Part shown: one piece after another, positions 8,269-44,736 of the stretch
How the letters are laid out: every line of letters starts with the position of its first letter
Numbering within the stretch: position 1 is the stretch's first letter
Origin: Mytilus trossulus
Lineage: Eukaryota
Direction: 5' to 3'
DNA length: 64,000 nucleotides
Assembly (NCBI RefSeq): GCF_036588685.1
Contig: NC_086385.1
Coordinates: forward strand, 6,634,001 to 6,698,000
Notes under the pieces: model-generated
Seen by the model: the letters and a program-made list of their open reading frames with translations, nothing else
Databases searched by the model: none
What the model was told of the DNA's origin: nothing
Made by a program: the position numbers and the translations under genes

Positions 8269-8717
8269 TTTCATCAGGTGATTTAGATGAGGAGAAAAAA
8301 AGATGGCTGATCGTTGGGATCTGTCTTCATTCAATTATATCTCCTCTGCTAAGAAAGTATGTTGATCCTATTCTTAGTAACTTGTTTAGTTCTCTAGTAG
8401 CCAGCGACTTCATTGATACACAGGGATACAATAGATATTTAAAGAAATATCCAGCAACAAATCGATATTTTCTTAATTATGAATCAATAAACAACAACAG
8501 GAGCGTACCAAAGAAGAAGATCAACAACAAATGGATAAATGATTACCAAGCATATGATTACAAAGTGACGAGCCATGTCGATTTATCAAAGTTGTTCCTA
8601 CAGCCAAGTATGGCTCATTACACCGCAATTGATGAGTCATGTGACTCGTCTGCTCTGCTTGGTATGGTCGTCAACATCAGTTCATTTCAATTAGCTGTGC
8701 AATTTGATGCAGAAAAG
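8269..8717 (+). CDS. Gene 1 exon: N-terminal part of a HEPN-type domain
   Basis: Polypyrimidine/TAG acceptor and AAG|GTATAC donor. Open frame SSGDLDEEKKRWLIVGICLHSIISPLLRKYV...SHVDLSKLFLQPSMAHY...CDSSALLG...DAEK. Confidence 0.85.
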
Positions 8718-9451
8718 GTATACATTTTCAAGACAGGTTTAACATTTAGTATCTGCATTTGAATTATAAGGCTTCCGGAAAACGTTTCAAGGAGCATCTC
8801 TATATAACTAATAATAGAAATGTTGAAAGTACAGAAATGAAATAAAATTGTCTAATTTTGTGGTATTTAGTTTTTAGAGTAAGAATATTTTGAATAAAGA
8901 CCGTGTCATTTTTAGTATTTTGAATTCTGATAACTTAGTTTTAAATTATTGTATTTTACAGGCAAAGTATTACATTAATTGTGTAAAGAACACACAATTA
9001 AACAGACTGTTAATATCTGTACAAGCTTTCCTTACATTTTTAATATTATTTCTAAAGAAAAACACGAGTCATTTGTCGACAGATGGGGTGAATTTATGGA
9101 AGTTATTTAATTAAATTTGTTTTTAATATGATTATATATTTAATGAATTCATTCGCATAATAAAAATAGTAAAACAATACCATAATCTTGATTAATGTCA
9201 TGTCACTTACGTCCTGTAAAAATGTATGTATGCACTAGTTTGACACTAAAACATAAATTAAATTAATAAAGATGTTCGTGTTATAAACAAGCAAAACTAT
9301 ATCGATATGTTAATGAATTGAGCAAACGGAATTAAAATTTGCAAATTGAATTTAGCTTCATTGAAACTGTTCTGTGGGTCTTTGAAAACGGAATTTTGCC
9401 TGTCAATATTCACGTAATGGACTAAATATATCTCTTTTAATAATTATTCAG

Positions 9452-9620
9452 ATACGATCAGACATACGTAATCCATGGGCACATTGTGACTTCACAGAAT
9501 GGACGACAGCAAAATATACAGATTCCTTCCAGCTGATGGAACAACTTGTTAAGGACCTTGGTCTTTATAACAGAGAGGAGAACAGAGTTTTAGGAGCACT
9601 GAACACTTGGGCAACAAATG
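9452..9620 (+). CDS. Gene 1 exon carrying the HEPN catalytic motif RNPWAH (9467-9484)
   Basis: TTCAG| acceptor and G|GTAAC donor. Reads IRSDIRNPWAHCDFTEWTTAKYTDSFQLMEQLVKDL..., an R-N-x3-H motif. Confidence 0.85.
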
Positions 9621-10934
9621 GTAACATTAATATATAAGTTATGAATAATGAAAGATATATTGCTTTAACCCAATCAACTACTGTATAAAATATAATTTTG
9701 CGATGTTACACACAAATGACACAAAATATGTGAATGACACACCATGCATGTATTGTTGTGACTCTTATCAGAAATAACAACATATATATATTGTTGTGAA
9801 CAAAGTCACAGATGTCATAAAATAATATTTTTTTTTAACTGAATCAAATATGACTTAAAATTAACTGTGCTGTCATAAGAGAATAAGAAGTTTAGCGCTA
9901 TAAAAATTGTTTTTATCCACCATTTTGTACATAAGAAAATGCCCGTAGCAAGTCAGGACTATGACAGTTGTTGTCCATTTGTTTGATGTGTTTGTGCTTT
10001 TGATTTTACCATTTGATTAGGGACTGTCCGTCTTAATTTTTCTCGGAGTTCAGTACTTTTGCGATTAAATTTTTTGCCTGAAATGCAGTCATATATACAC
10101 TTATAGGCATAGATGTCATCAAATCTATTGTATATGACTAAAATAACCGATTTTATAAAATATATATATTATCATCTGAATTCAATATAACCCAAAAGCT
10201 GATACTACCTTGACTATATTAACAAATGACACAACATACATGATATCTACAGCGGCTTCAAGCATTTATCAGACGAATTGTGCACATTCTGCTACAAGCA
10301 TAAATTTGGCATTGAGCGTCTTCAAACAACTACTCTTTTAAATCAGGTAGGGAGGCATTTAAAAAAAATATGTCTCACATCTGGTAAAATCCAAAATGGC
10401 GAACATGATAATTTAATCAGCCCAATATCGAACGCTAGATTAATGTGGAAAGGTGCTATTATCATGCTACTATCATGCTACTATCATAATATTTGGTACA
10501 CATTTAAACCTTTGTTATGTACTACTTTTGGGTATATTATATAGATAAGATATCTTCAAAAACCCTACTTTCGGTAAAGTCGAATATTGCATACATTGTA
10601 CTGTGAATTCATTTTTTTTATGGGTATATATATTTTCGTGGATTGAGTTAAACTTGCATTTTCGTGGATATTTAAATTCGTGATTTTAGAAAAGTTTGCA
10701 TTCACGCCTTTAGAAAAGTTGTAATTCGTTGAATACTTTAATTCGTAGTTCCCCTGTATTCACGAAATTTACAAAAAAAATCGGTATCCAACGAATATTA
10801 ATGACTCCACAGTAAGCGTATTTGTTAGGTAGGGTAATTGAAATGTGTTTTAACGTATTGCTACTATCATTATATTGTGCAGGAACCTTTATTTGATATT
10901 CTGGTGGATACAATGTATAGGAAATAATGATGTT

Positions 10935-11590
10935 ACCCTCGGGGACTGAAGGTCCACCAGCAGAGGTATCGACCCAATGATGTAAAAAAATTAAAACAAC
11001 GCGTTTGATAATTTCTTGCGTCCGACGCGCTTTATCTGGATTTAACTTTATCCAGAACGCTCAAAACCAGATTTGAAATTCGAAGATGTATAAGTACCAA
11101 AACCGTTGAAGAGCTAGACGTCAAAAATAGCAAAAATAAATAGCTAAACTCATCAAAAGCCAACTTTGCCTGAGGGAGTTGAAACTTTATTTTCTTAATA
11201 AATTAAAAATTTATAAACGGACAATTCTATTAAAGTCAGTTAAATCATGTCACTACCGAAGTACTGACTACTGAGCTGATGATACACACGGGGACTGATA
11301 GTCCACCAGCAGAGGTACATTTTTTTTCGACCCAGTGATGTTTAAAATTGTAAACAACACGTTCAATAATTTCTTGCGTCCGAAGCACTTTTCTGGATTT
11401 ACTTTAATCAGGAACGCTCAAAGCCAAACATGTGAAATCCGAAGATGAATAAGTACCGAAACCGTTTAAGATCTATATGTCAAAATACTAAAAATAAACA
11501 GCTAAATTCATCCAAAGCCAACTTTGCCTAAGGTAGTTAAAACCTTAGTTCCTTGATAGTCCACCAGCAGAGGTGTCGACCCGGTGATGT
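10935..11590 (-). mobile_element. Head-to-tail array of ~350-nt retrozyme-like units, family 2 (degenerate hammerheads at 11018-11060 and 11376-11417)
   Basis: GTCCACCAGCAGAGG recurs at 10952, 11301 and 11559. Minus strand of the second unit reads GCGTTC-CTGATTA-AAGTAAATCCA-GAAA-AGTGCT-TC-GGACGC. Confidence 0.75.
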
Positions 11591-11940
11591 ACAAGATGAT
11601 CAGGCCTTACAAAGAGTTTTTTAAAGGGTTCCTATGGATCTTATATGTCCCTTCGCCATCTATTAGCGCCTGAACTGAATAGCATAATAGCCAGTTTCAC
11701 GTTCGTCCTCCTAGATTCAATACTTGTGGCAAGATGTGCACAATTTTTCTCGCAGCCGCCGTACTATATTGATGTGTCCAATATCACATACAACACATTA
11801 ATGCATACCAGATATATTTCAATGACAGAAAATGACAACACATAATTTGCTGCTATGTTTGGCTACAACACACATGAGAAGTAATCCCTGAATCTTTAAA
11901 AGCCTTACCCGAATAATAAATATAATATTCTTGTTTACAG

Positions 11941-23830: not shown

Positions 23831-24120
23831 ATCTTCTTGAGACAAACAGTCATTGAACTCAGGGATGTTAAAATTTACATAAACTTTAAATTTCACATCC
23901 TAAAATAACAGTTACAATATAAATTGTTATGAGATAATGTGATGTAAATTGTGTGATATTTTCAAAAAGGTATGTATAATGTTGATAATATGTATGAAAA
24001 TGCATTGAATTTTCCCTATATGATGTGATGATGGGTAGTTATGCATGTCCATTCGACTGTAATTAAATGGACAGAATAGACACCGAGTGTCTTTTTTCGT
24101 AAAAAAAAAACCAAAATATA

Positions 24121-24925
24121 AAAGAGGGACAAAGGATACCAGAGGGCTAGTCAAACTCACAGATCGAAAAACAAACTGACAACGCTATGGCTAAAACAGA
24201 AAAAAAGACAAACAGAATAATAAGAGTACACAAGACACGACATAGAAAACTAAAGACTAAGCAACACGAACCCCAACAAAAACTGGGTGAATATCAGGTG
24301 CTTCGGAAAGATAAGCAGTTTAACTCCATATGTGTCACTGTCGTCTCTCTCATGTTATTACAAACCCAATAAATAGTTGGTATGTCATATTTGTGAAAAG
24401 GGGAGAGAATTGTAGTCCCACATAAAGAACATATTCGATATCATTTGTGAAACGGTTATTCCATGACGGTCAACCGACTCGTGATGGTGTCCATTTAACA
24501 TATCATCCATAAATAACATGGAATTGGTTGATAGGATCTTAATAATGATCACTTCAGTGCACTTTTTTGTTTGAACTATCATAGGTAGTGATCAGCCTTG
24601 AAAGATATAAATATCTAGTCAGTACCATAGGATTTTGTTGCAATCTATACCAAATAAAACCAACTCTTTATTTCGACAATCAACTAGTCGGGACAATCAG
24701 TAACGAACTTTAGTTTCCTTATCTGTAACGTGTCTGTAACTACCCATGATATTTTTCACCTCTAGTTATTGGTGGGGTTACTGTTGTTTTTATTCTTTAG
24801 TTTTCTATGTTATGTCATGTGTACTATTGTTTGTCTGTTAGTTTTTTTCATTTTTAGCCATGGCATTGTCAGTTTATTTAAGATTTATGAGTTTGACTGT
24901 CCCTTTGGTATTTTTCTTCCCTCTT
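24121..24925. mobile_element. Two Penelope-like family A tails in inverted orientation (24121-24490 minus; ~24745-24925 plus)
   Basis: AAAGAGGGACAAAGGATACCAGAGGG at 24121 and its reverse complement ...CCCTTTGGTATTTTTCTTCCCTCTT ending at ~24925. Confidence 0.75.
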
Positions 24926-24929
24926 CAAC

Positions 24930-26566
24930 ATCAATTAAAATTATATTGTGGTTTCGTAGACTTCCGAAGGACGTTTGATAAGGTGGACAGAAGAATTTTG
25001 ATATACAATCTTCTCAAATCTGGAGTTAGCCGTAAATTCGTATCAATGGTTAATTCTATTAATTCATCTGTGCGTTTACGTGTGCGGTCTGGTGGAGTAC
25101 TATCAGAGGCTTTTAACAATCATATTGGTGTAAAACAAGGCGAGCCCGTATCTCCGTTACTTTTCTTATTTTTTTATAAATGACATTATTCAAGATATCT
25201 CCACCGATGTAAACGAAGATGTCATATCGTTGAATGGAATCCTTATATATCTAATACTTTTTGCTGACGACACCGTTTTATTTGGAAAAACACCGACTGT
25301 TCTGCAACACTTATTTGATACACTTTTACTTTACTGCAATAAATGGAATATCGAAGTAAACGCTGATAAAACCAAAGTAGTGGTATTTAGAAATGGATTT
25401 AGACCAGAAGACACTCAATTTTTTTCTATGATAATAAGGAACTGCAAGTTGTTAATTCATATGTGTACCTTGGTGTATTAATACATTACAACGGAAAGTT
25501 TTTACATACAAAGAAACGTTTAGCACAACAAGGATCTAGAGCCATGTCATCTTTAATGAACTCTCTCAAACAATTCTTCATCACTCCAGAAGAACAGATG
25601 TTTCTTTTCGACAGTATGGTCGGATCCATTTTAAGCTATGCATCATACATATAGGGTTTCCATCGTGATAAAGATATCGAACTTATCCATAATCGTTTTT
25701 GTAGATTTGAGTTAAAATTGGGTCGAAACGAACCAACATGCTTTTTATATGCCGAACTTGGCCATTTATCTCTTTTTATTGTTAGAAAACAAAATATATT
25801 GAAATATTGGTTACATATTATTACAAATAAACCAAAAGTTTTATACGATGTGTATAAACTCTTGTATGACGATGCTATCAATGTTTATGTAAACTGGGCC
25901 TAGAATATTCGTGATATGTTATATGATCTTGGTTTAAATTAGTTATGGCTAAACCAAGATACTAGCACAATTTGTATAAATAACATTAAAATTCGTATTA
26001 AAGATCATTACTTGCAGAATTGGTCAACTACTATTCAAAAATGTAGTAAACTGTCTTTTTATAGTACATTTAAATTAACTTTTTATATTGAAAAATATCT
26101 GTCTTATAGCAATAATTGTTAATCTGTTAACAACTTTACGTAGTGGAACATTAAAGTTAAATTTTGAAGTTGGCCGTTATAATAATATTCTAGAGAAAAT
26201 CGTTTATGTGAATATTGTTAAATGTGTGTTATTGAAGATGAATACCATTTTGTTCTTGTTTGTCCATCTTATAGATCTGTACGAACACAATTTTTACCTA
26301 AGTACTATAATTGTCATTGGCCTAATAATATCAAACTATTAAATTTACTACAAGCTTCTAGTAAGTCTCTCACGATCAAAATATGTAAGTATATAAAAGC
26401 TGCATGGAATATTTGATCTAATATAGTCTCATAACTTAATTTATATGTCACTGTATTATACTATTGTTCTCTGCTGTCTATTCATGTTTTATATTATGTA
26501 ATATATGTTGTTAATTTTGCCATAGCATGTCTATGCTTTGCAATAAAGATTCATTCATTCATTCAT
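24930..26566 (+). mobile_element. 5'-truncated non-LTR retrotransposon (LINE; RTEX/L2-group-like), degenerate
   Basis: LYCGFVDFRRTFDKV..GVKQGEPVSPLLF..ILFADDTVL..YLGV RT motifs, a C-terminal EDEYHFVLVCP motif, then AATAAA followed by a (TTCA)n tail. Confidence 0.9.
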
Positions 26567-28705: not shown

Positions 28706-30069
28706 ACTCTCACCTAAGCAATTCTGCAATAATATTTATGTATTTATTTCTCATTAGGTCCGGGAACACAGTTATTGTAATTGGATTTTCGTTTGTCACG
28801 AATATAGTCCCTACAATACTGGACCAAAATACCAATGTTAATACCAGTAATAGTCAATGTGCGACTGTTTGAGTCGGTGGAAAACTGACGATGACTGTCA
28901 AATCAACTGATAACAACTGTGAGGGTTGTGACAGATGCCTTTTTTCATTGTAACAGTTAATTTTAGTCTGTCCCATCACTTTTATGGGTTGTGAAAATCA
29001 AAATATGCTATCATCAGTTATTTAAGGAAAAGAATTTATTACAGTCTTTCCAAAATTTGGGGTAGTTGTATAATGTTTGTCCCAACCATTTAATAATTGG
29101 AACAGTTTAAATTTGTCTGTGTCAACTTTTCAGACTTTGATGCAATCAAAAAATGTTTGTTACAACGTTTTTATAGTTTCATGAAGATATGTCACAGTCC
29201 GTCACTATTGATAAGTGTCATATATATGATGATGGAATTTTTTAACTACCATGACTGGCTTAACAGCCCTGGCACGGTCGTTGGTAAGTGTCAAATGACT
29301 GCTTGCTGTACTTATAAGAGTCAGATGTTAATACATGTATGTTGATAATCTTCTTAATTACTGTTCATTCTGAAACTGACATTTTATACTATATTCATTT
29401 TAAGTTCGCAAATTGTTTCACTAAAACTTAGTAAAAATGGCTTTTGAAGTCATAAAGCAGTATAAAGCTTAAAAAAATATTACTTTACACCTAATCTTAC
29501 TCTGAATTATAAAATTGAGAATGAAAATGGAGAAAGTGTCAAAGAGACAACAACCCGACCATAGAGAAGGCAACTGTATTCAATATTTTTAGGCGCTTAA
29601 TTATTGAAATTTAACAAAATGGTGGATTCTTGGGAGGTATATTGCATACAAGGAAAAAACTCAAAAAAAAATCATTTTTTGTCTAAAAAGGGTCCAAATA
29701 AATGTTTGCCTTGCTCCGCTCGGCGGGGTGCCTCCCCTTTACAGGGGAGGCAATTTACGGCCCTGCTTCCTAATATTAATAAATAGTTAGTGATTGTAAT
29801 ATACTTTATAACTTCATATAGTAATTGCTTTAATTAGCTTAGCTTCGTTTATTAAACCCCAAATTAAGTTCCCTTGCTGGTCTCTTACCGTCTACGTTTT
29901 GTAAGCAGGCTGATATGGTTTGTATTCAATTAAATGACAACTCGGCCAACGACAAACTCGATCCACGGCCAAAACGCACCACTAAAACACTCTAACTAAT
30001 CATTACAACTTGCATCACTTGATCATAGTCGCACCACTCAAGAAAAAAGAAATATAACAAACTCGAAGA

Positions 30070-30440
30070 AATGCGTTTCATCATCAGATTGATTTCTTCT
30101 TCTCTTGGTAAACTCCTGTCGTATTGGAGTACCCGTGTCACAGAGAGACAGATCTCACACCACTCGAATGAAACAAATAAAACTTCGCACAACTGAGGAA
30201 ATGTTTAAATCATCAAAGAATTCTGTATTGTCTTCTCTTTATTATATATTCTATTCTTGGAGCGCCCGTATCATACAGAGATAGAACTTGACTCGCCTAT
30301 TTCGAAAAAAAAAAATACTACAAACTGGCACCATTGACAAATGTTTTAATCAGCAGTGTTCTAGGTTGTTTTCTTTTTCTTTATAGGAGAGTTATATCCT
30401 CCGTTCAAGGCGCACATGAGTAACACCGAGACAGAAACTA
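30070..30440. repeat. Degenerate tandem repeat, about 2.5-3 units of ~140 bp
   Basis: TTGGAG(T/C)(A/G)CCCGT..CA.AGAGA.AGA and AAATGTTT.AATCA recur at ~135-150 nt spacing. Confidence 0.5.
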
Positions 30441-33400
30441 CTAAACTTTCAAACTCTAGACTGACTAATAAAAAATATCAACATAATGCATCAGTGCATA
30501 ACACAGTTTGAGAAACAAGTATCCAAGCTGTGTATCACAATAAACATTTTAAGTAATCCGGGTTTTTTTCTAGTTAATAATATATGTAAAGGCAAACAAG
30601 ATAAATAGTGTACAGTGATATAACTCTCATAAGAAGAAGGTGTACGATTACAAGAGTTATTATGAAAGCGTAATCACTGCTCCATATAATATTCAAAAAA
30701 TCGTTTTGATATCTTGTTTCAAAGCAAAAACAAAAACAAAGACATAAAAAAGAGGAAGAAGAAGCACAACGATCTCAGAACATAATCAACATGATCAAAA
30801 GGAAAATTGAAAGATTTATTATTTATAATAACACTAGAAGACAGATTTTATTGTACTTATGGAGGTATCCACAAACAGATGGTTAGAACATTATGCAATC
30901 CCGGTTACATAAACATAATAAAGAAAGCATGTGCATTTATGCTCTCAACCCTTTACTATTGGTTATGCTACCCTTCAAATACATGACTGAATAATATTAT
31001 TTTCAAAACTCGAGTTGCATGTAATGATTTTAATTTGGTTTTACGTTTCGGCGTATGTACAGATATCACTTTTTAAATTAATATTTTTGTATTAAAAAAA
31101 AAAGTGTGTAGTAGCCTGTTCTTAGTCTTCGGTAGTCTTTTTCAAGTAAATAATCCTCACTTTTTGTTTTATCGATGCTACATGTAATTACATTTTTTGT
31201 ATGTTTTTATTCTCTATCATTTAAGTTTTTTGACAGATCTTCAGGATCTACGGAAGCACATATTGTTCCATATCATGATGTTTGGGCGTCTGATGGTTAT
31301 TTCCTGTTTTCGATATTTTACTGTTTAATGTGAAAAGGTCCAAGCAAATGACGTTATGTTTGTCCAATGAAAAACAAGTTGCTAAAGAAGACTTTAAAAC
31401 TATCAGTCAGGTAAATAGTATTTTAAACTTTTGACTTGCAAATAGTATGGGGAATAAAAAACAACAAATATTTCATTCTTTCTTATATCGAAAAAAATAC
31501 CGTGGTATAACAATTGGATATATTTACGCATTACGAATTGATTTTAGTGAGAAATAAATATAAATAGAGAAAAGGTATCATCGAATCAATGTCAAGTATT
31601 ATGAATCATTTGACTTTCAACATCTTTTCATTTTGATTTTTCTTGGTATGAAAGACAAAAAGTTAATAAAAAATACCGAAATCCATGGAAAATTAAAAAG
31701 GGCATGTCCTTAAAAACAGACAAAATCAAACGTAATAAATTAACAGAACACGTGAAAAACAATTGCCATATTCCAGACTAAAAACGGGAACTTTTCCGAA
31801 GTTAATGATGAATTTAACCTTGATAAAGCTATTTCAACCTTTCATTTGTATTTAAGTTGTGATTAGTTTGTTAAACTGAACAAATTGGGTGAGCAACCCA
31901 GAAAAACGGCCCATGTGACAATAGTTGGGACACAGCAGCCAAAAACGAGTAACACACATCACAAACATATAACACAACTGACTCAAAAATTCGAACAAAC
32001 ATACAAATACATTTTACAAAGACGATAACAAAAAACATGAAAATGTTGAAGACAGTAAATTTGATAATGACATCAACCCAAAAATGTTTTTGTTGTTGAT
32101 AGCACATACCGTATACAGTATACACTTTCTCAAAAAGATAACCAATGGGGAAATATAAAGACAAGGATAAAAAAAATAAAAACAACATTGTATAAAACCC
32201 AATGTGTCCGAATAGCATCTCCGAATCCACCTGCACAAGCTACGTCCAAAGTTAAAAAGGCGCTGGATGAATACATACCGAGTCAAACGCCGTACGACCA
32301 AACGAAACATAATAACTTCAAAGTGAATATAGGGGAAACTAGTTGCAAACTATTGAAGATCGTGAATTTATAAATACATATACTCCATACGGTGGTGAGG
32401 TTTGTATATTGCTGATAAAGGGATGAACATTTATCATTTTAAATCAGAAATCGTGTCGTTTATCATTCCGGTACTGACTTGCCCGCTGTTGTCAAATTCG
32501 AAGTATAATGAAATAATGCATAAGAAGCTTTATCTTTAGTCCATAATTTTTTACTCAAATTGATATATTATTTAGACTTGATAAGAAAGTTTGGATTGTT
32601 AATCCAAATACTATATAAACGCATGAGAGTACTATGAAATTTGCCAGTTTTACAATCAAAGTTAGAAACTCTTACGCAACAGTATTTGACCAAATTCAAA
32701 ACTATAAATACTGATACTGACCCACAAAATTCTCATTATTTACATCTTCTTTTTATTTGTTCGAAGCACTTTTCTAGATTTACTTTCGTCTAAAATGAAT
32801 AAAGACAAATATTGGAAATATAAATATGAATAAATACCTTCATACATGAGAAGATATTTGACCAAATTCATAAAATGTCAAGTTTGTCCAATGGGGTTGG
32901 AACCTATTTTTTTTTAAGTCTTTAAACTTATCAACATGATTTTTAAAACATGTTTGCCATAACTTCTGTCGAAAGAAAATCCTTATAAATAACTTAGATC
33001 TTAGATACAGGTTTGTACTGGTGCATGATAACTGTTCTTGAATGTTTTTATATCATACGTAATTTGCATATTATATTAATGATTTGTATGAGAGTAAAAT
33101 TGGTAATAAGATATACAAAAAAATAGAAAAAAAATAAACATTTTGGAGCTTAGATTTATACTACGCCCGTTTTTTGTATAGCTTAAGACGATTTTAGCAC
33201 AATTTGTTTTTTTACTTTTGGGATTTAATGCTATTCAACTGTGTACACGATTGTCCTGCATTCTAAACAATTTCAACCCCTAAAACAAAAATATAAATAT
33301 ATCTCTGTGTACAAACTTTTTGGGTTTCCTGTTTTAGTGAATTTATTTTAGTATGTAACTTGGCCTTCAACCTATGTTTTTGTCGCATCTGGCGTAATAA

Positions 33401-34199
33401 TTCAAACATTTTATATCTTTAGATTGCATTTACGACATTGACTACACGAAGGTGATAAGCAAAAAGGTGGTTGAGCACATGTCAACATGTTTAACTAAAC
33501 TAAAATAAGTGGTTATACAAAGACAACCAATGAAAACAATCGGTTTATGTTGGTTTTTGTGTTTGTGTCATGTGAAACATTTGAGTCGGTCGGAAGTTGG
33601 TCGTTGCGCTTTTTTTTACTTTTTTTCAGATGCTGCTGATTCGCTGTTTACCTTTATATATTATCTTTATCATGTTGATATAAGCCAAGGTAAACTTAAT
33701 TAGCCTATCCGCATTTAGAAAGAAACAGCAATATAAATTTAAGTTTAAATAGTAAGAATGAAAACAAAATAGAATATCTGTCAACTAAAGTTTTATTGCA
33801 AATCGGTATATATATAGCAGTATGTTTATAAGCTATTGATTATATGCAACCAGACGAACAGATGCCGCCTAAAACAAGTGGTAAATGAGTCAAATATCTT
33901 TCCTCAACTACATTTATGCAGACGTAACCCGGACTATTCTCTTTATTTTTGGTATTAAGATTATGCATGCAGCTGTATTCATTTACCAATTCACTAGCTT
34001 ATTTATACGAGGCGTGCTCAGCTCTGAGAAAACGTATTAGATTTGACATTCAATTTGTTTTGTTCACTTAACAATAATCAAAGCTTAATTTGGATATTTT
34101 AAAAGTAAACAAACTAACATATATCGTGGTACAAAATGAATGCATGTTATATTCGTAAGAAATGTAATGTACTCATTTTGGTTTAGTTAAACAAGTTGC

Positions 34200-34645
34200 T
34201 TGATAAACGAATTAGGAATTGACAATTCACTTGTACACACAACATATACCCTCACGACACTTACCAAAAAGGAAATCCTATGTAATCATAGGTCTGATCA
34301 ATGTTCCTTTGGAATTTCAACCAAAGATGAAGAACTGGATCTTCCATCACTGTATTGAATACCTAAACGACATAAGTGTCATTACAAACAACGGTATATT
34401 GCTGGGTCTTCAAAAGTGCTCGACGAAACCTTTTTCGAAATTATTAGCTTCTATTTTATCAGCAATCAAAGACGGTCTTCAAAGTTATTGTGAAAATGCC
34501 TATTCTAGAGGTGGCTTACAATACGTGTGAGTCAAGGCTCCGTGTTGAAGGCCGTATTTTGACCTACAACGGTTACCTTTATAAAATGTGACTTGGATAG
34601 AGAGTTGTCTCATTTGCACGCATACCCCATTTTCCTATATCTATT
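34200..34645 (+). mobile_element. Internally deleted Penelope-like element (RT N-terminal region fused to a family B tail)
   Basis: NELGIDNSL..TYTLTTLTKKEIL..SFGISTKDEELDLPSLY*IPKRHKCHYKQRYIAGS/KCSTKPFSKLLASILSAIKDGLQSYCENAYSRGG, then GTTGAAGGCCGTA...GAGAGTTGTCTCATT. Confidence 0.8.
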
Positions 34646-35735
34646 ATGGGTATTTTTCTAGGAGTAAAACAAGGTGTAGGCAGTGGAATGAAACATTTAT
34701 TTCGCTTGAATTCGAAAGTTTTGAAATGTGTTTCCCGTCGAAAAGTTATAACTCCCTTGGGCGATTTTCTTGTGAAATATAATTCCTCTTGAGTTAACAC
34801 ATCTTCATATCTCCCTCGGGCACGGAAAATAAATGAGATATTACCATCATTAAGCGTCCGTCGCCTGTCTCTCCATCCGTTTTCGAAAACTTAAAAAAAA
34901 AGAAATCTTCACCTCTGACACAACTGCGCCAAATGATTGACATGGATGGTCCATCGGGAATCATGTTAAAATTTATAACCAGGATTTGTAGAACTCGTGG
35001 GCTTAATTCAAAATATTGACTTTTATATAGAAAAACTAGCTCATTTGAGGCAAACACGGACAATAGATAACAATAATGCTTTTTTTTTTAAACCATATAT
35101 TACAACCCGTTGCAAACTCATAGTTGTTGTTTAGTCATTGACTTGAAAATGTTATAGAGAGAACGAAAATGATATTGAAGAATGATTTTCAGGATCATTA
35201 GCTATACTAGGATGGTAATTTTATGTTAATGACGGTTCTCAAGAAACAGAAGAGGACTACCGGCCATCACCAGGACAATGGCAAACACAGTCGTTTACGA
35301 TCCTATATTAACGAACCTAGCTCGTTTCTACTCAAAACTTAAATGTTTAAGGCAAATGATCATTGTAAATAAAATATATACATCAGTCGGCACTCGATGG
35401 CATTACCACATTTAGTAGTGAAGATATAAATAATTTTGAAATGTTTTTTTTTTGGATTGAAACTTGCGCATATACACTCGTAACATACTTCATTAAAGCA
35501 TTGATAGTTCCTTTGCATATTCATATTCATAATTTTCCCAAACAGACGGAAATGAGAAAAAAATATTTTTGTTTTGGTTTCTCATCAAATACAGTCTTAA
35601 AAATTAGATGCTTTAGTCATTCGGGATCATAATTTCTTTTCTTTTATTAACCTTAATGTTTGCCTTCACTGTTCCCTTTATTCTGTATATAACCTTCAAT
35701 ACCCTGTCAAATAAAACTTTACAATAATTTTAGTA

Positions 35736-35967
35736 ATGAACAGGATGGTATCAAAAGAGGAAGAGAACTTTCTACGTATTGTGTATCTAAACTACAGCGT
35801 AGCCATTAGAGCACTTACAACATTCTTTGATAAACTACACCCAGACTTATCGGCTGATTTATATATCACAGGGAACAAAGCTACACTCAAACAGCTGCTA
35901 CATCCACCTCCTGGTATAAAACGTGTTCTCTATCAAGGACAATGGGATATTCTTTATCCTCCAACAG
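35736..35967 (+). CDS. Gene 2 first coding exon (DZIP3-type HEPN N-terminal part)
   Basis: MNRMVSKEEENFLRIVYL..AIRALTTFFD..KRVLYQGQWDILYPPT, with donor CAG|GTAAGT. Confidence 0.88.
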
Positions 35968-36409
35968 GTAAGTTCCGAAGTGAAAACGAGTTCTCTATCA
36001 CGTGGTTTTACAGTTTTATAAACGATGGCTTTCAATTCACCTGTAATTGTAGCGGGCTTCTGTATACATTTCAACCACGCGTCGGATATACTTTCTAGCA
36101 ATTCTTATGATTAGAAAATTATAATAAAGCGTACTATTTTGATTCTTTTATGCATATGCCGATTTTAAATATGAGAGCGTAATGTAATTCGACGTACTCC
36201 TCCTGTGTAATGGGCATAGTCATAAATATTTAAAAACAATGTATTCAAATTTTCTTTTATCCTTTTTTTAACGAAAGAGATTGTTTTAAATGAAAATAAT
36301 ACCTTATTAATTTCATTTTTCCTGAGAGTTTTCTCTCGATTGACCGTCATCAAGATCTTCAAACCTAAACATATAAAAGCAAGTGATGCAAAATACTTTA
36401 AAAATAATA

Positions 36410-36790
36410 CAAGAAATTGAAGACAACACGTTAAATAATTGAATGCGCCCAAAGCGCTTTTCTGGATTCACTTTCATTAGGAACACTTCAAGCCAAACAT
36501 TTGAAATCCGAGGATGTATAAGTACCACAACAGTTAAAGAGGTATATGACAAAAAAGCTTAAAAAATAGCCAAATTCATCGATGGTCAACTTTGCCAAAG
36601 AATAGCCAAATGCATATTTATAGTCACCTTTTTTTAGGTAGATAGAGACTAGGTCTCTTAAGAATTTATCAACCGGATATTTTGAAGTAGGTATAAAGCA
36701 TGTCAGTGCTACACCATTTACTACTGAGCTGATAGTACCCTAAAAAACCTAACAGTCCACCTGTTGTGGTTTTGACCAAGTGCTAATAAA
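36410..36790 (-). mobile_element. Retrozyme-like family 2 monomer, degenerate (hammerhead remnant at 36445-36486)
   Basis: Colinear with the 10935-11590 units. Minus strand reads GTGTTC-CTAATGA-AAGTGAATCCA-GAAA-AGCGCT-TT-GGGCGC. Confidence 0.7.
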
Positions 36791-37006
36791 TGGACATTTA
36801 TTTAACTTTGTCCGTACGAGGCGCTTTTCTTAGTTGGTTTTTATCAGGAATATTTGAATTTTTGTAGATTTCGTGGATATAGGATAGTCACGAACTTGGA
36901 TGTTCAATTAACACATGACAAAGTACAAAATCAATAATATATCATATATAATAATATACTTACATTGGCAAAATAGTTATCAAAGGTACCAGGATTGTAA
37001 TTTAGT

Positions 37007-37050
37007 ACGCCAGACGCGCGTTTCGTCTACATAAGACTCATCAGTGACGC
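37007..37050 (-). ncRNA. Minimal type I hammerhead ribozyme, intact core (family 1 fragment 36970-37085)
   Basis: Minus strand reads GCGTCA-CTGATGA-GTCT-tatgt-AGAC-GAAA-CGCGCG-TC-TGGCGT. Confidence 0.88.
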
Positions 37051-37886
37051 TCATATCAAAATATTTATAAGCCAAACAAGTACAAAACCTCGAAATCAAA
37101 TATTCACGCAATCATAATGTTTTCCTTAATCAACGAAAATAAATTTATTCAAAGTACCAGGATAACGGGTGTTTCGTCTACAAAGGAAAATTCAGTCATC
37201 ATGACGAAAATAAAAAAAATTAAAAAAGGCGAAATCAAGTACTAAGTTAAAGAACATAGAGGACAAAAGATTTCGAAAGGTTTTGCGATTTATCAATGTG
37301 GAGTCGCGAGTTAAAACAATATGTGATGCCATGACATGATGCTAAACCAGTTGCCTTCTTTTCAAGGAAATAATGCTGATAATGTTTTCAATCTCATAAC
37401 TTCTAAACTCTTTTTCACCAAATGTACGAAGATTTTGATGAACCCATGTTTTATTGAAAGATCTCAATAACTGAAGGAATGTGCACAATGTCTTACAACA
37501 ATCAGAGAGTCAATACAGGGCGCTACACATTGCATTACTGTGTTGATTGTTGATTGGTGTAGATTTGTATACATGGATGATGGTAGTCACTTTTATAAAC
37601 AAATTACTTCTTTATAATTATGAAATAATGCAATCATAACATGAAATGTCCTAAATTGTTATACTTTAAACGCAGAAATTTTCGTAGAGGATTTAATTTC
37701 GTTTATTTCGTGGAAATAATATATCAACGACATTGAAACCCTCACGAAAATTTAATCTCCATATAAGACCTCTTAGATTTAAGGAATTTCATGAAATTAG
37801 ATCCCCATTAAATCTTACAGAGAGACAAAACCACGAAATTTTAACCCCACGAAAGTTAATGCTTCTACAGCATATTTCTATTGCAG

Positions 37887-38127
37887 GGACACCAATAGTA
37901 ACTTCAGCTGATTTGGACTTAACTTGATTGTGTGGTCACTGTGTAACTTACCTCCACTTGTTGTAGCTCCTGTAAATGGATTTGACGAGCTACATAATCC
38001 TTATGACAAAAGTGATGGAGCCAACATTACATGCTTGAAATATTATAAAAATGTTCTAGTGTCACATTCCAAAGATGGTTCAATATCCAATGTAGACTTT
38101 GTTGGAATGTGGAATACTTTAGAACAG
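37887..38127 (+). pseudogene. Gene 2 exon 2 (HEPN core; 1-nt deletion; catalytic R replaced by K)
   Basis: TTGCAG|GTPIVTSADLDLT/LIVWSLCNLPP..APVNGFDEL..DKSDGANITCLKYYKNVLVSHSKDGSISNVDFVGMWNTLEQ|GTAACA. Confidence 0.85.
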
Positions 38128-38957
38128 GTAACAATACTTAGCTATTAATTTTTTAAAACAAATGAGCAAATCTTGAAAGCTTCTCGCTCTATCTGCATTT
38201 GGTGTCAGTCATATATTTATATCGTTATCCTCAACTTTTTTTTTGGAGTGGAGTATGAGTTCCAATGAGACAACTCTCCGTCCAAGTCACAATTTATAAA
38301 AATAAACCATTATGGGTCGAAGAGAGGTCTTCAACACGAAGCTTTGGCTCACATCGAAAACAAGCTTTAAAGGGCCCCAAAAATTACAAGTTTAAAACCA
38401 TTCAAACGAGGAAAAGCCACCGCGGTCTAATATATGTTTACTCAAAATTTGATGTCTTTCAGATAAATTTTTATTATCAATAGAACTAGTCCAAGTTCTA
38501 AGTTATAAGCCTGTGATTGAGACAATGGTGCGCTGAATATGGAAGAACAATATGTAGTTGTTCTATATAATAACCCCCTGTGTAGTTTTTCTCTTTAAAA
38601 AATATTCATCTCTAAAACTACTTGGCAAAAAGGGTAGCGTAATGCTGTTCTCGACAACTTGACTGTTCATTAATATTAAATTTACACAAATTTTAAATTA
38701 TTAGTTTTTTTTCTCAAGAAACTGGAATACTCAGGACTTTTTTGATAATCACTATATCACACAAACTGTAATTTCTGGTGTTTCTGGATCACAACCTGGT
38801 TACTATAATTACGGGCGATACTCAAAGATATAGTGCGAACCTTCAACTGTTAGAGACCCGCACACCCGAAAGAACTTCACCTATGATTGAAATAAAGTTG
38901 GTTTTTTGTTGATATTCAAGATGTTACCTTTCCTGTAACAGCTGTATCTTTCTTTAA

Positions 38958-39682
38958 GGTAGCACAATACAAAGATTTATTTACTTCCAATCCCCAACCT
39001 TTAAAACGCTGTAACTTTCTTAAAATTGCATATAAATTAATAAAAGAGGTATATGTAGATAGATAAAAGAATAATCTTTTAAATGAATGCAATATTTTTG
39101 TTATGCAATCATTATGTAATCAATTATTATACAATTAGTTGCAAAATCGTGGTCAGTTCACTATAATGAATTTAGCTCTTTATTCTTTATAGCTACACAA
39201 GAAATTTGAACGTTATCTTAATTAGCACAGCAGGAGCTTCAAAAGGGTGTCTCAAATTATCGCTATCGTATTCCATTCTCTCATAAATTTGTAATTAGTG
39301 TAAACATCCTTACCACAAAAGAGTAGATAATGTATGATTAGGTGTAACATTTGATCTATACATTCTATCCAAAATCTGAGACAACCTTTTGTAGATAATG
39401 ACTCAAGGAACAACATATAATAAAATCAACCCTCTAGGAGGATCCATGAAGAAGCTAATTTCAATTGAATGTGGAAATTTGTTGTAAAATTTTGTAGACA
39501 CAGTTATCATTATAATTGATTACATAATTGTTGTATAATACTAACATTGCATTAATTTGAAAGAGTAGTCTGTGTTAGCTATCCATGGATACCTTTATTA
39601 TAAATTTTCAAGCATTATAACGAAAGTTACAGCATTTTAAAACTGGGGAATTGGAGGGTTAAAATCTTTGCATTGTGCTACC
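38958..39682. mobile_element. Complete Kolobok-like MITE with TTAA TSD
   Basis: TTAA|GGTAGCACAATACAAAGATTT ... AAATCTTTGCATTGTGCTACC|TTAA; imperfect TIRs extend ~180 bp. Confidence 0.85.
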
Positions 39683-40684
39683 TTAAATGAAACATTTTCC
39701 AATAAAAAAAAAAGTGACATACAATTCAACCATGCCTACAACAAAGACCAATTTCCTTGTCAAATTTTAAAGTGTTGTGGTCATTTTAAAACAAGAAACG
39801 ACAATCTCGGTATTCATAAATATTCAAAGGAGAAACAAAACAAAGTTTTAAAGAGATTAATAAACAGAAAAGGATTGCAACAGTGCCATCCTTTTAATCA
39901 AACTATACACAAGTTCTTTTGCAGCGACATTTAAACTCTATAATGGTCAAGATCCGATGATTTACCTTTACCGTGTAAAAGTGCCAAGAAAGAAATAAAC
40001 GACATGAATACGAATGTTATGAGAAAAATGGGGTGGGCTCTATAGCCACTATATACTTTGTAAGAGGTTAGTAACCTCATGTTCATTTCAAACACTACAT
40101 CTTGACGACTCATACATTAAAATTCTAAATTTAACTTACTTACTTACTCAATTACAATTTACATAGTGGTTTCACGATGACGAACGGCAAAACAGTCCTT
40201 CTTAAACAAAATGTTTTTCTTGATAAAAAAAAAACACACTCAACCGAAGCCCCTTCTATCGAACCTGCATGTTTCATTGCAAATATCAATCTTCTCAGAA
40301 CTGATAAAGTCTTTGATAATGTTTTTATAACAATATTTTCAAATAGTGCACTGACATTAGTATGGATTATATGTTTAAATAAATCTTTCTAGAAACAATA
40401 TCTGCTTTGAGGTAAAATTTATCTATGTCTTTTTTGGAACATGCATTCATTGCAGTATATTCAGTATACACGCGGTAAATCAAATAATTTCGAAATTAAT
40501 CCATGGAGTAAGAATAAAACCCAGAAAAAAGTCCTTATTTTTTTATGGTTATAGAAACAAAAATAGAAAAAAATATATATACAAGTAAGCTCATAAGCCT
40601 GCCAAAATATGATATTAAGGAATACTTTGAATTTAATGGCCCAATTCAGTCATTTGTCAGTTTCACATTATCTTTATTTTTCAG

Positions 40685-41024
40685 GCCATTAAAGGTCTTG
40701 ATAATTCACAAGCTTCTATTGTAAGTTTAAAGGATACTGAAACAAAGATGCTGGATAATTCAATGGCACAAATATTGTCTCTCAAAGGCAACTCGAAAGG
40801 AAGGTTTCGAATCTTCAAGATGAGTTGGAGCAAATTTCAATATATATTGACAATGATGTTCAAGAAAAGAAGGAACTTAAACAGCCAACATCAAATCTAG
40901 AAGAAATAATAAAAATAAAGGGAGACAATCTAGAGAGGCTTATTGGCAAAAGTAAAAAAAAAAATAGATAAATTTTATGAACGACTGAATAGTAGTGAAG
41001 TTATTAGCCTTGAAACTAAATCAG
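40685..41024 (+). pseudogene. Gene 2 exon 3 (coiled coil; two frameshifts)
   Basis: TTTCAG|AIKGLDNSQASIVSLKDTETKMLD../QRQLERKVSNLQDELEQI../IDKFYERLNSSEVISLETKS G|GTATCT. Confidence 0.8.
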
Positions 41025-41672
41025 GTATCTCTTTTATATTAATGGTAATTGTTAAAGCATCTAGATAATGCATGTCCGTGCCTGTAGATGTAAATTCACG
41101 AGACACGTCAAAACACTAAATTTGACCAAATATCTGATATGATGCATAAGCCCGGGGAGTTACAAGCTCGTTTGTGCCTCAATATCTAAATACACTACTT
41201 AAATGTATAGATTTAATTGTTGATCATTGCTTTCACCGGCTTCACCTACTTATTTGTTAACTATCGAAATGAAAACATATTAAAGGTCATTTAAAAAGTG
41301 TTTTCATGCACTGCTTGCAACCAATATTGTTCGAATTCTCCTGTACCATGTTATTGAATATTTTGTAACAAACTAATATAGTTTCATGAACTATAATATG
41401 AATAAATCACCAGCTTCTTTTAACAAGGCCAGACAAACAAAGTATTGAAACTGAATTATTATATGTATGGTTAAAGAGGGGCGAAAGATACAAGAGGGAC
41501 ATTGCTCTTCACATTCGTACTATATTTGACATTTTTGCTTCTTTTTCAAGTGCCACTAATGAGTCTTTTGAAGACGAAAAGCCTGTTCTAATTGACGAGT
41601 TTGATTTGCATACAAAACTACATATAAACTTGATGGAGGTGTATAACGAATAAGTACTTGTTTGAATTTCAG

Positions 41673-41732
41673 ACTTATTGCAGAATGAATTGAAAAAACA
41701 AGAAAAAGATCATATTCCAAACTATATTAGAG
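41673..41732 (+). CDS. Gene 2 60-nt phase-1/phase-1 linker exon
   Basis: TTTCAG|DLLQNELKKQEKDHIPNYIR G|GTATGA; same length and phases as 16752-16811. Confidence 0.88.
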
Positions 41733-42530
41733 GTATGATTTGTATAAACTTTCCTCGTAATTGTAACAAGAAATTTATATGAATGCTACCTGTTAATTAT
41801 AGATTATTTATTTTCAGGAATAATCCAAACTGATATACATCGATCAAATATATTTAAATACAATCATCATTTATATGTTTGGCTTTATATTACATCTGAT
41901 GATTAGTTATCTTATAAATTCTTCTGTCTTATGCGTGTACAAAAAAGAAGAATCAGAAAGGTTCATCGGGTTTTGATAGTGGATTAATATTAATCATAAT
42001 TGTTCCAGATATCAGGTTCAAGTATGACAGTTAAATAAGTTTTGAGTGAGAACAGCAAATTCATTATGATATGCCATTTCGAAATGATACGCCGAATTGC
42101 GCTAATGTATAAGCTCAAATGACTTCGGACAGGTACATATATACTATTAAGAGGTAAAACATTGTTGTTGGCGTCCAAACCTTCCGAAGAGAGTGGTGTT
42201 TCAGCACAATATAAGGGCTATAAAATCAGTATAAGGGATAAATTCAGTTACAAATTCCCCGTTGACTGCAAATCTATATATTGAATTAAATTTGTACCTG
42301 ATTTATCTTTAGAAATCCAGAGCTTTCATTACCAAACTTTAACATAAAAAAGTTTATGATCGAAAGACAATATCCAGAGTAACTTATTTGCATTTAGATA
42401 CAATCATGATTTAAGCTTCGTTTAAATGTTACGTGTTCAATAATTATGTGTTAACCTTTGCAATAAATAAACCTCTTTCTAATTCCTTGATTGATGATGA
42501 AAACAGTGGTTGTCATTTTTTTATTTGCAG

Positions 42531-44736
42531 TACAACATGAACAAAAAAAATCAGACTGGGAGCAAGACAAAAATACGTTTGTTGAAACCAGAGCATGTAT
42601 AGTTGTTACAGGGAGTTGTGGTAAATCTTCAAACATACACCATATTGCCTTACACTTACGTAACAAGTATGGATATGAGATAATACCTGTTTTCACAGGA
42701 CCATCAGATATAACAAACTATTATAAAACAAATAAACCACAAGTGTTTGTTGTAGATGACATTTGCGGAAAGGAAATAATCAGCAAACTCACTTTACAGA
42801 TCTGGAGAGATTATTCCGAAAATTTGGAAAAATTATTTGCAAATGAAAAAAATAAAATATTGAATACAAATCCCTCAGAATTTCAGGTCAAAAACTACTG
42901 GTTTCCTGTACACTACATATATACAAAGAATCACAGTTTCAACGTATTACATTACTGACCAAAAAAGAATGCAATATATTATCATCAGATTTATGTTTGC
43001 TACCGAAAGAAAGAATGTTCATTATGCAAAAATACCTTCCGGATAATATTATTGACACGCTAATGCCATTGGTGGGGGATGTTGACTTTTCCCCTTAATC
43101 TGTAAAATGTCAAAAAATAAAACATTACAAGAAGTCAAGAAACTTTTTACAGATCCTGTAGATATTATTGAAAGGAACATACACTGCATAATTTCCGAAA
43201 GCAAATTGCAATTCTGTGCTATTGTTCTGTGTATCGTATTTGATGATGGATTCAGAACAGATTGGCTAAAATTAACATCAGCTCCAGAGACGAAGAGAGC
43301 AAAACTTGAATATATAGTTAATGAGTTTGATATAGACTTAACGAAAGAAATGTCAAGAAATTATTTAAAAGACTGTTTCAGAACCTTAAATGGAACCTAT
43401 TTAAAACAAAAAGGTACAAAGTACACAATGATACATGACAAAATCTATAAAATGGCAGCTATTATATGTGGGCAGCAACTTACCGATTTTTTTTATCAAA
43501 TATACCTCTTCTGTATTTATAAGGGGTCATTTTATTTTCAAATCTGTAACGGAAGTTCAAACAAAAGATGACTTGATAGCAATATCCAAAGACCAAGAAG
43601 AAAAATATTTTGAACGATTATTATATGACTTAAAACAGCATGTCATTACAAGTACATTTCATAATTCACAGTTAATATTCAAGTCATTCATCGAGAAGTT
43701 TATAAGTTTTTTTGGGCGGAATGATGATGCAAAAGCATTACTTAATAAGCTTGAGGTAGTAGTAGGCGTAATATCGAGAGACGATGAATAACAAATATAT
43801 AGGTTAATGTCAACCTTAAGTACAACACCTTTAATTGAATCAGCAGCAGGTGGCTACATTGAAATTGTACAGTTTCTTATTGTTGAAATTAACTGTGATG
43901 TAAATAAGTGCGATTCATACGGAAGTAGAAAAGGTAGGTCAGCTTTATATATGGCATCTGAGAGAGGACATTTAGATGTAGTTCAGCTGTTATTAAAAAA
44001 CAATGCAGAAGTTTCCCGGTGTAATGTGGTTCTAGAGTCTTCATTGTTTGTGGCATGTAAAAGAGGACATACAGATATTGTAAGACAACTACTGCAGGGG
44101 AAGGCTGATGTAAATCAGTGTAACTGTTATAGAGAGTCTCCACTTGGTGTGGCCTGTAAGGGAGGACACACAGATATAGTGAAACTATTACTTATGAACA
44201 ATGCTGATGTCATTTTATGTAATGATGAGGAAGAGTCCCCATTGTTTCTTGCCTGTGATAGAGGCCATAAAGATATAGTAGAACTGTTACTGGAGAATAA
44301 TGCTGATGTCTCTCAATGTAACATCTATAAAGATTCACCACTGTATGTGGCCTGTCAAAGAGGACGTACAGATATAGTAAAACTGTTACTACAGAACGAT
44401 GCTGACGTCTCTGAGTGTTACAGTGATGGTGATTCTCCATTGTTAGTGGCCTGCGAAGAAGGGCATACAGAAACATTAGAATTTCTACTCCAAAACAATT
44501 CGAAATTCCTTTCGCATGACATTGATGGAGAATTTTTATTGTATGTGGCCTGTATTGAAGGACAAGATAACACAGTGGAAATGTTACTGAAACACAATGC
44601 TAATGTCGTTCAGTGGGAGATTGATGAGGAATATCTTGCATTACTATTACGTGTGGCCTTACAGAACGGACATGACAAAACAGGAGACATTTTACTGTCA
44701 TACATTGCTGATTATCTTCAGAGTAACAGTTATTGA
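42531..44736 (+). pseudogene. Gene 2 last exon: degenerate nSTAND3-type NTPase plus ankyrin repeats (~43820-44700)
   Basis: Colinear with gene 1 (VFVVDDICGKE, TMIHDKIYKMA, TTPLIESAAGGY), with several frameshifts and a stop. Confidence 0.9.

Follow-up and report, generated by a model that had tools for sequence, protein, structure and literature searches.

A stretch of 64,000 nucleotides from Mytilus trossulus (contig NC_086385.1), hereafter the window, contains two neighbouring genes that an earlier note had read, from the letters alone, as a candidate non-canonical NLR immune system composed of an N-terminal HEPN RNase, a STAND NTPase and a C-terminal ankyrin sensor. Two questions are raised by this locus, namely whether either gene can work as such a system and whether the system is new.

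Structure and integrity of the two genes

Gene 1 (8277-23908) and gene 2 (35745-44736) were confirmed as neighbouring paralogues on the same (+) strand. Each combines a predicted HEPN domain with nSTAND3 and ankyrin domains, and their NTPases are ~66% identical (Table 1). Retrotransposon fragments were observed on the flanks of both genes. Searches used the individual exons of the two genes, and naturally occurring paralogues from databases (P numbers) stood in for the joined proteins. In gene 1, the predicted exons have AG/GT borders and match Mytilus proteins one by one. Exon A has at least 58 paralogous copies genome-wide; no counterpart was found in the window for the initial coding exon, which in relatives adds ~36 residues ahead of exon A.

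Table 1. Exons, motifs and lesions of gene 1 and gene 2 in the window.
Feature	Position	Strand	Evidence or detail
Gene 1 exon A, first three quarters of the gene-1-type ('T1') HEPN-like domain, open frame	8277..8720	+	tblastn P0003, P0008, P0012, P0151, 51-80% identity; AG acceptor, GT donor
Gene 1 exon B, final helices of the T1 HEPN-like domain	9452..9622	+	tblastn; motif
R-x4-H motif of exon B	9467-9484	+	RNPWAH
Gene 1 exon C, charged helical linker (putative 'coiled coil' of the earlier note)	11940..12125	+	tblastn P0003 residues 227-288, P0008 residues 244-309
Gene 1 exon D, short linker (..EDHIPNHIRG)	~16751..16819	+	tblastn P0003 residues 299-320, P0001, P0013; splice sites present
Gene 1 large 3' exon: nSTAND3 NTPase, helical region, ~30 ankyrin repeats	~19057..23908	+	Pfam PF20720 67.5 bits, Ank families; acceptor somewhere within ~19057-19085
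Gene 1 Walker A	19195-19218	+	GSSGCGKS, intact (consensus GxxxxGK[ST])
Gene 1 Walker B	19333-19359	+	VFVVDD, intact (consensus hhhhDD)
Gene 1 nonsense codons	19828-19830, 21010-21012, 22754-22756	+	TAG, TAA, TAG; translation across breaks
Gene 1 frameshift	near 21450	+	
Gene 2 exon 1, start codon and initial helices of DZIP3-type HEPN	35745..36005	+	HEPN_DZIP3 profile positions 10-52; 91% identity P0009, 71% P0013
Gene 2 exon 2, remainder of DZIP3-type HEPN	37870..38130	+	tblastn P0013, P0010 in two frames; three-frame view; frameshift near 37921
Gene 2 exon 3, helical linker	40682..40965	+	tblastn P0010, P0013 in two adjoining frames; three-frame view; frameshift near 40776
Gene 2 large 3' exon: degenerate nSTAND3, helical region, ~8 ankyrin repeats	42530..44736	+	PF20720, Ank
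Gene 2 frameshifts of the 3' exon	near 42872, near 43092, within 43440-43540	+	
Gene 2 stop	43789-43791	+	

The NTPases of both genes matched nSTAND3 (PF20720, cut-off 27.2 bits), that of gene 1 over profile positions 1-150 of 155 (E 1.4e-18) and that of gene 2 on a 155-aa piece (49.3 bits, E 5.5e-13). The motif set described in the earlier note is encoded in full by gene 1 (FVKT, GSSGCGKS, VFVVDDICG, SCR and FFPL), but in gene 2, which retains the Walker B sequence VFVVDD, the P-loop is reduced to GSCGKS, with a loss of 12 residues just upstream, as compared with P0009, P0013, P0003 and P0198. The C-terminal ankyrin arrays were recovered in both genes. The claim of an N-terminal HEPN domain in each gene stood only in part. 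Gene 1 does encode RNPWAH, and gene 2 exon 1 alone gave a partial match to HEPN_DZIP3 (PF18738; 20.8 bits, E 3.6e-4, under the curated cut-off), but the two domains are of different types, and the motif of gene 2 is KNVLVSH, in which K replaces R and R-x4-6-H is therefore absent. In HEPN domains, the R of this motif is usually followed by a polar residue. Intact gene-2-type relatives scored 76-127 bits with the same profile.

Introns by themselves do not account for the fragmented open reading frames. The large 3' exons carry stops and frameshifts, and homologues aligned straight across the stops in tblastn, indicating that the breaks inside these exons are damage and not introns. In gene 1, the N-terminal HEPN-like domain, the linker and the NTPase core are intact; the first TAG lies directly after the NTPase, and the other two nonsense codons and the frameshift lie in the ankyrin array, a pattern that suggests recent inactivation. 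Gene 2, with at least five frameshifts and one stop, is heavily decayed as judged from its sequence. The uninterrupted frames retained are 257 aa (gene 1) and 155 aa (gene 2), as compared with 487-2024 aa, mostly 700-2000, in the ~23 closest paralogues on the same chromosome. The lesion calls rest on one assembly, in which both copies are probably pseudogenes or null alleles, as tandem old members of a lineage-expanded Mytilus HEPN-nSTAND3-ankyrin family.

The HEPN-like domain of gene 1

The profile search suggested as a check recovered nSTAND3 and ankyrin, but HEPN_DZIP3 stayed under its cut-off in gene 2 and no Pfam model was matched above threshold by the gene-1-type N-terminal domain. The best curated HEPN match of this type was HEPN_Swt1 (PF18731; 19.9 bits, E 9.5e-4, under the 27.5 cut-off), and gene 1 exon B itself gave a sub-threshold match over the R-x4-H motif (E 0.058). 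Such sub-threshold matches were observed in every member with the motif exon and in none without it, and RN.WAH was kept in all six gene-1-type paralogues examined. Over the R-x4-H helix, the best sequence matches of the gene 1 domain were Swt1-like HEPN and DUF4559 (PF15112), which we take to be the CXorf38 family, all under curated cut-offs. The nearest ESM Atlas clusters were HEPN_DZIP3 or DUF4559 (0.95-0.96), with HEPN_Swt1 at 0.86.

An AF2 model of paralogue P0151 (pLDDT 89.5) placed RNPWAH where helix 178-196 ends at its C-terminus and the following loop begins, the position given for the HEPN motif in PMC3710099. In contrast to Swt1-like and DUF4559 HEPN domains, the predicted domain has its long first helix separated from the motif helix by an insert of ~95 residues that contains a beta-hairpin. 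The topology of the model appears HEPN-like, with VIA scores that lie within the chance range of helical bundles: at least nine HEPN structures (among Csm6, sacsin, Swt1, AbiF, AbiA, 1wwp, 2hsb and Roquin) were in the top 50 at Z 6.0-6.9, and the yeast Swt1 C-terminal domain (4pqz) was aligned over 122 residues at Z 6.4. Foldseek of the same model against PDB gave no match at E<=0.001, and a profile of the gene-1-type alignment A2 gave nothing at E<=10 against all PDB sequences. The comparison of gene-1-type (7 sequences) and DZIP3-type (8 sequences) alignments by hhalign returned a probability of 2%, from alignments too shallow to decide, and a homodimer prediction made with residues 37-242 of P0151 scored 0.00, which is evidence neither way.

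We tentatively propose, with somewhat less than even confidence, that the gene-1-type domain forms a HEPN subfamily restricted to bivalves, for which no curated model exists and which is marked by R-N-x-W-A-H, a conserved CDSSALL helix and the beta-hairpin insert, and that it has been repeatedly exchanged with the DZIP3-type HEPN by exon shuffling on closely related mussel nSTAND3-ankyrin modules. This unmodelled HEPN and the repeated swaps of two HEPN types on related NTPase-ankyrin modules are the modest new points of the analysis.

Relation to known families and defence systems

A genome-wide count of paralogues gave at least 150 NTPase copies (E<1e-28). They include an intact relative of 1683 aa (P0198, RefSeq XP_076089437.1) with RNPWAH, GSSGCGKS, nSTAND3 and ankyrins, so the suspicion that the domain combination might already exist in bivalve annotation was correct. 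P0010, P0013 and P0020 combine HEPN_DZIP3, nSTAND3 and Ank. The effector-STAND-repeat reading was upheld for the family by these four intact proteins, but not for the genes of the window, which are broken, so that neither can itself be a working system. Strictly defined, NLRs carry NACHT/NB-ARC domains and LRRs, which this family lacks: the NTPase is nSTAND3, NACHT was seen just at E 0.032 in 3 of 30 relatives, and LRR families had no match in the window genes or the relatives searched. A canonical NLR was rejected on these grounds.

Fusions of DZIP3-type HEPN domains to NACHT or ankyrin, which are expanded in oyster and Nematostella, were described in PMC3710099. More than 50 HEPN-NACHT genes with a proposed RNase output were reported in pearl oyster (PMC9646362), and the same HEPN-NACHT expansions are found in cnidarians (PMC8260672). 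HEPN-STAND/NACHT-repeat expansions in bivalves and cnidarians and the proposal of an RNase output are therefore already published in silico. Like the DZIP3/hRUL138-like fusions of these studies (PMC3710099 Table 1; PMC9646362; PMC8260672), the mussel proteins have a HEPN at the N-terminus (with Rx4-6H, although K stands for R in the gene 2 subfamily), a STAND-class NTPase in the centre and repeats at the C-terminus, form large clustered lineage-specific expansions, invite the same RNase-effector hypothesis and contain PF18738 itself (P0010, P0013, P0020 and, under the cut-off, gene 2). They differ in that the NTPase is nSTAND3 and not NACHT, the repeats are ankyrin and not LRR, TPR or WD40, the HEPN type of gene 1 falls under every Pfam threshold, and both window copies are broken.

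The bacterial defence protein Avs5 has nSTAND3 as its NTPase (10.1101/2025.07.08.663546). The tripartite effector-NTPase-helical-repeat layout and PF20720 are shared with Avs5 (AVAST type 5; SIR2 - nSTAND3 - TPR/Sel1/PPR), whereas the mussel protein has HEPN in place of the SIR2 effector and ankyrins as the sensor, and is encoded by a multi-exon animal gene. PADLOC gave no Avs model match for the gene 1 NTPase or intact P0198, and membership of Avs was rejected. The best PADLOC match of the gene 1 NTPase was the candidate PDC-S73 (E 5.5e-8, a weak match of the P-loop region), together with typeIV_RecD (E 0.0084); the matches of P0198 were limited to ankyrin-type models and LeoA.

RNase L (ankyrin - pseudokinase - KEN/HEPN) is likewise an antiviral-type protein that joins ankyrins to an RNase domain of the HEPN superfamily, and it is activated by ligand-driven dimerisation. 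In the mussel proteins, the order is reversed (HEPN - NTPase - ankyrin), dimerisation driven by 2-5A is replaced by a STAND NTPase switch, and the HEPN belongs to a different family, KEN being circularly permuted (PMC3710099). No kinase or KEN family was matched in gene 1, gene 2 or the intact relatives searched with Pfam.

Stop codons and frameshifts disable both genes, which makes the locus an unremarkable, decaying portion of a known family. It belongs to a catalogued family and is not a new system.

Proposed mechanism and its biological meaning

For the intact members, a STAND-type intracellular sensor is the most likely mechanism, inferred at each step. Binding of a ligand by the C-terminal ankyrin array would relieve autoinhibition, and the nSTAND3 NTPase would then oligomerise in a nucleotide-dependent manner. 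The N-terminal HEPN domains would thereby be brought into dimers, whose paired R-x4-6-H motifs may form a metal-independent RNase site and cleave viral and/or host RNA. This order of ligand, oligomerisation, HEPN dimer and RNA cleavage has already been proposed for such animal HEPN-NTPase fusions (PMC3710099, PMC9646362). The earlier statement that no functional description was known agrees with our literature searches, in which no functional study or experiment on any family member was found.

That gene 1 itself still functions is unlikely. Its lesions could be assembly errors or a null allele beside an intact one, or a truncated ~580-aa HEPN-linker-NTPase without the sensor could act as a partner or regulator of intact paralogues. 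In favour of function, no lesion is found in the N-terminal exons, RNPWAH, Walker A or Walker B, the splice sites are kept, there are just four lesions in ~4.8 kb, so that the ankyrin array still reads as long ORFs, and bivalve immune-gene clusters are reported to be strongly variable between haplotypes (PMC9646362). However, three independent substitution-type stops are improbable as assembly errors, the closest paralogues of gene 1 keep long open frames, and gene 1 adjoins the clearly decayed gene 2 in a setting where retrotransposon fragments flank both. Inactivation therefore remains the preferred reading of gene 1.

The HEPN domains of the family might also be non-catalytic RNA-binding, adaptor or oligomerisation modules, with signalling or scaffolding as the output in place of RNase L-like cleavage. 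The K for catalytic R in the gene 2 subfamily recurs in the annotated relatives P0013 and P0065, so not every member need be an RNase; PMC3710099 lists losses of the motif in HEPN families and in individual members, and our literature search found no RNase assay of DZIP3-type or gene-1-type HEPN domains. We consider this rather unlikely for the family as a whole, as every gene-1-type paralogue examined keeps RN.WAH without exception and Rx4-6H is kept in 194 of 202 pearl oyster DZIP3-type HEPN proteins (PMC9646362). A role other than pathogen sensing, such as allorecognition, defence against transmissible cancer or transposons, or stress-induced cell death, appears improbable by a wide measure. 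Large, fast-evolving, clustered families with swapped effectors are also typical of allorecognition and anti-transposon systems, and transposon RNA was proposed as a possible target (PMC9646362), but the effector-STAND-repeat layout and the NTPase family common to bacterial Avs5 (10.1101/2025.07.08.663546) best fit pathogen sensing, by analogy only.

Both the HEPN-STAND idea and the family had been described before, in publications and in database annotation, and the locus consists of two probably dead copies. Its value therefore lies mainly in being an example of birth-and-death turnover and a pointer to an unmodelled HEPN subtype, the gene-1-type domain, which is a candidate for a family model of its own. 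If the subfamily and its exchange with the DZIP3 type are real, they would describe a cassette system in which RNase effectors are swapped on one sensor scaffold. If the intact members work as proposed for a STAND-type sensor, they would represent STAND receptors of animals in which killing results from RNA cleavage itself and not from death-domain signalling, a finding that would connect Avs-type defence of bacteria and RNase L with the immunity of invertebrates.

Structure and decay of the two genes

The window is AT-rich animal DNA free of N runs, from a Mytilus assembly of 1.3 Gb. Two genes on the same strand were delimited by translating all six frames and by running tblastn with proteins from databases; they were searched one exon at a time, with natural database paralogue proteins standing in for whole domains. 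Upstream of 8277, tblastn gave no match to the short first coding exon found in relatives of gene 1 (about 36 residues, e.g., in the 242-aa paralogue P0151); this exon may be too short for tblastn, too divergent, or lost.

Exons and lesions of genes 1 and 2 (window positions)
Gene	Feature	Position	Strand	Remark
1	exon A	8277-8720	+	AG acceptor, GT donor
1	exon B	9452-9622	+	AG acceptor, GT donor
1	exon C	11940-12125	+	AG acceptor, GT donor
1	exon D	about 16751-16819	+	AG acceptor, GT donor
1	large 3' exon	about 19057 to 23908	+	start approximate, acceptor site not pinned down
1	lesion, TAG	19828-19830	+	immediately 3' of NTPase core
1	lesion, TAA	21010-21012	+	
1	lesion, frameshifting deletion	near 21450	+	
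1	lesion, TAG	22754-22756	+	
2	exon	35745-36005	+	tblastn / six-frame translation
2	exon	37870-38130	+	tblastn / six-frame translation
2	exon	40682-40965	+	tblastn / six-frame translation
2	short exon	near 41700	+	tblastn / six-frame translation
2	exon	42530-44736	+	tblastn / six-frame translation
2	lesion, frameshift	near 37921	+	within HEPN exon
2	lesion, frameshift	near 40776	+	
2	lesion, frameshift	near 42872	+	
2	lesion, frameshift	near 43092	+	
2	lesion, frameshift	within 43440-43540	+	
2	lesion, stop	43789-43791	+	
2	lesion, P-loop cut down to GSCGKS			
2	lesion, 12-residue deletion			just upstream of P-loop; absent from database relatives P0009, P0013, P0003, P0198

The reading frame of the gene 1 large exon was broken at four places. 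Homologue alignments by tblastn ran unbroken over the first stop, indicating that the frame breaks are not introns. The lesions of both genes were read from one assembly, and the three independent substitution-type stops of gene 1 are unlikely to be assembly errors. Damage to gene 2 was far greater than that to gene 1. The RefSeq model XP_063412587.1 (P0009; Mytilus trossulus, 698 aa) is 91% identical to the first exon of gene 2 and 74-90% identical to its NTPase (window 35745-44526 compared), and skips the second HEPN exon; by sequence comparison it may be the gene 2 orthologue, called coding by leaving out decayed parts.

A whole-genome search with the gene 1 NTPase as query returned at least 150 NTPase copies at E<1e-28. 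About 23 close paralogues (61-72% identity) are clustered at 0.9-13.3 Mb of the same chromosome, with open frames mostly of 700-2000 aa as compared with 257 and 155 aa for the two copies in the window, which itself sits within this super-cluster. Reverse-transcriptase fragments (RVT_1) lie between the genes at 24860-25481, and a LINE-type endonuclease and reverse-transcriptase fragment (Exo_endo_phos_2, RVT_1) lies downstream at 53961-55418. Two plus-strand ORFs of 137-139 aa (60961-61380 and 59891-60304) are without Pfam match or similarity to the family.

Domain content and the N-terminal HEPN types

The earlier note had read an N-terminal HEPN, a STAND NTPase and C-terminal ankyrins in both genes. 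Pfam search bore out the latter two, detecting nSTAND3 (PF20720) in the large exons of gene 1 (67.5 bits, E 1.4e-18) and gene 2 (49.3 bits), each followed by a long ankyrin array. The NTPase motifs of the earlier note were all recovered in gene 1 (FVKT, GSSGCGKS, VFVVDDICG, SCR and FFPL), as was RNPWAH, encoded at 9467-9484. As to HEPN, the first exon of gene 2 matched HEPN_DZIP3 partially (E 3.6e-4, domain start only, under the curated cut-off), and the gene 1 N-domain is of a different type, for which Pfam search gave no family at threshold. All three of the closest annotated gene 2 relatives (P0010, P0013 and P0020) carry HEPN_DZIP3 and nSTAND3, with ankyrins in two. The gene 2 HEPN motif is KNVLVSH (38040-38060), where K replaces the catalytic R; the annotated Mytilus edulis relatives P0013 and P0065 share this K in their DZIP3-type HEPN, indicating from these sequences that it is a subfamily trait rather than decay. 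This subfamily may be catalytically altered or inactive.

At least 58 copies of the gene-1-type N-domain are present in the genome, and it heads annotated Mytilus proteins, among them P0003, P0008 and P0012. The intact RefSeq protein XP_076089437.1 (P0198; 1683 aa) combines it with RNPWAH, GSSGCGKS, nSTAND3 and about 27 ankyrins. P0151, 80% identical to exon A, was folded with a 30-sequence alignment, and the predicted model (pLDDT 89.5) places RNPWAH at the C-terminus of helix 178-196, running on into the next loop, which is the position of Rx4-6H in HEPN domains (PMC3710099). A large insert including a beta-hairpin precedes the motif, and inserts of this kind are frequent in HEPN domains (PMC3710099). 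Foldseek with this model gave no significant match. A Foldseek-independent structure search placed at least nine HEPN structures in the top 50 (Csm6 twice, sacsin HEPN, the Swt1 C-terminal domain, AbiF, AbiA, 1wwp, 2hsb and Roquin) at Z 6.0-6.9, a range that unrelated helical bundles also reach. HEPN_Swt1 matched the motif helix below threshold (E 9.5e-4 to 0.14) in all members with exon B and in none without it. The nearest ESM Atlas clusters carried HEPN_DZIP3 or DUF4559 (scores 0.95-0.96), with a HEPN_Swt1 cluster more distant (0.86), and RN.WAH was kept in six of six paralogues inspected. For the gene-1-type domain, hhalign of shallow alignments, profile search of PDB sequences and homodimer prediction returned nothing. 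Taken from the predicted fold and sequence, the gene 1 N-domain is very probably a divergent HEPN, its formal superfamily membership being putative.

Possible exchange of HEPN types and relation to known systems

When 35 NTPase domains (those of P0003-P0149 and of window 19072-19827) were placed on a maximum-likelihood tree, the N-terminal HEPN switched between the gene-1 and DZIP3 types at least five times over well-supported branches, a count that may be too high where gene models from tandem arrays are chimeric. Near-identical NTPases carried different HEPN types in the pairs P0008/P0013 and P0077/P0065. The tree suggests that effectors were repeatedly swapped by exon shuffling, the alternative being chimeras among the gene models.

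DZIP3-type HEPN domains are fused to ankyrin, NACHT, CARD, Death and LRR and are expanded in oyster and Nematostella (PMC3710099). More than 50 HEPN-NACHT genes, in clusters varying by haplotype, occur in pearl oyster, and Rx4-6H is kept in 194 of 202 DZIP3-type HEPN proteins (PMC9646362); in many cnidarians, HEPN is the commonest NACHT partner (PMC8260672). A reading as NLRs in the strict sense was ruled out, as the mussel family has neither NACHT nor LRR. Its architecture is also not that of RNase L. The NTPase of bacterial Avs5 is likewise nSTAND3; PADLOC Avs models gave no match to the mussel proteins. The family is already annotated, with "Novel STAND NTPase 3 domain-containing protein" and "DZIP3-like HEPN domain-containing protein" standing in UniRef as names of its relatives from Mytilus, and the literature search, in agreement with the earlier note, found no functional study of any family member.

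For intact members, the standard STAND model is best supported: ligand detection by the ankyrin array would release the nSTAND3 switch, and nucleotide-dependent oligomerisation would dimerise the HEPN domains, giving a composite R/H RNase site. Domain order, motifs and fold topology are the observed elements of this model, and its remaining steps are inferred from what is established for STAND proteins and for HEPN RNases. This mechanism had already been put forward for HEPN-NTPase fusions of animals (PMC3710099, on eukaryotic host-pathogen conflicts; PMC9646362). The observation is real, but the two genes form an ordinary pair in decay within a catalogued family, in which a gene-1-type HEPN with no curated family model and the repeated change of HEPN type on the NTPase tree are mildly new.
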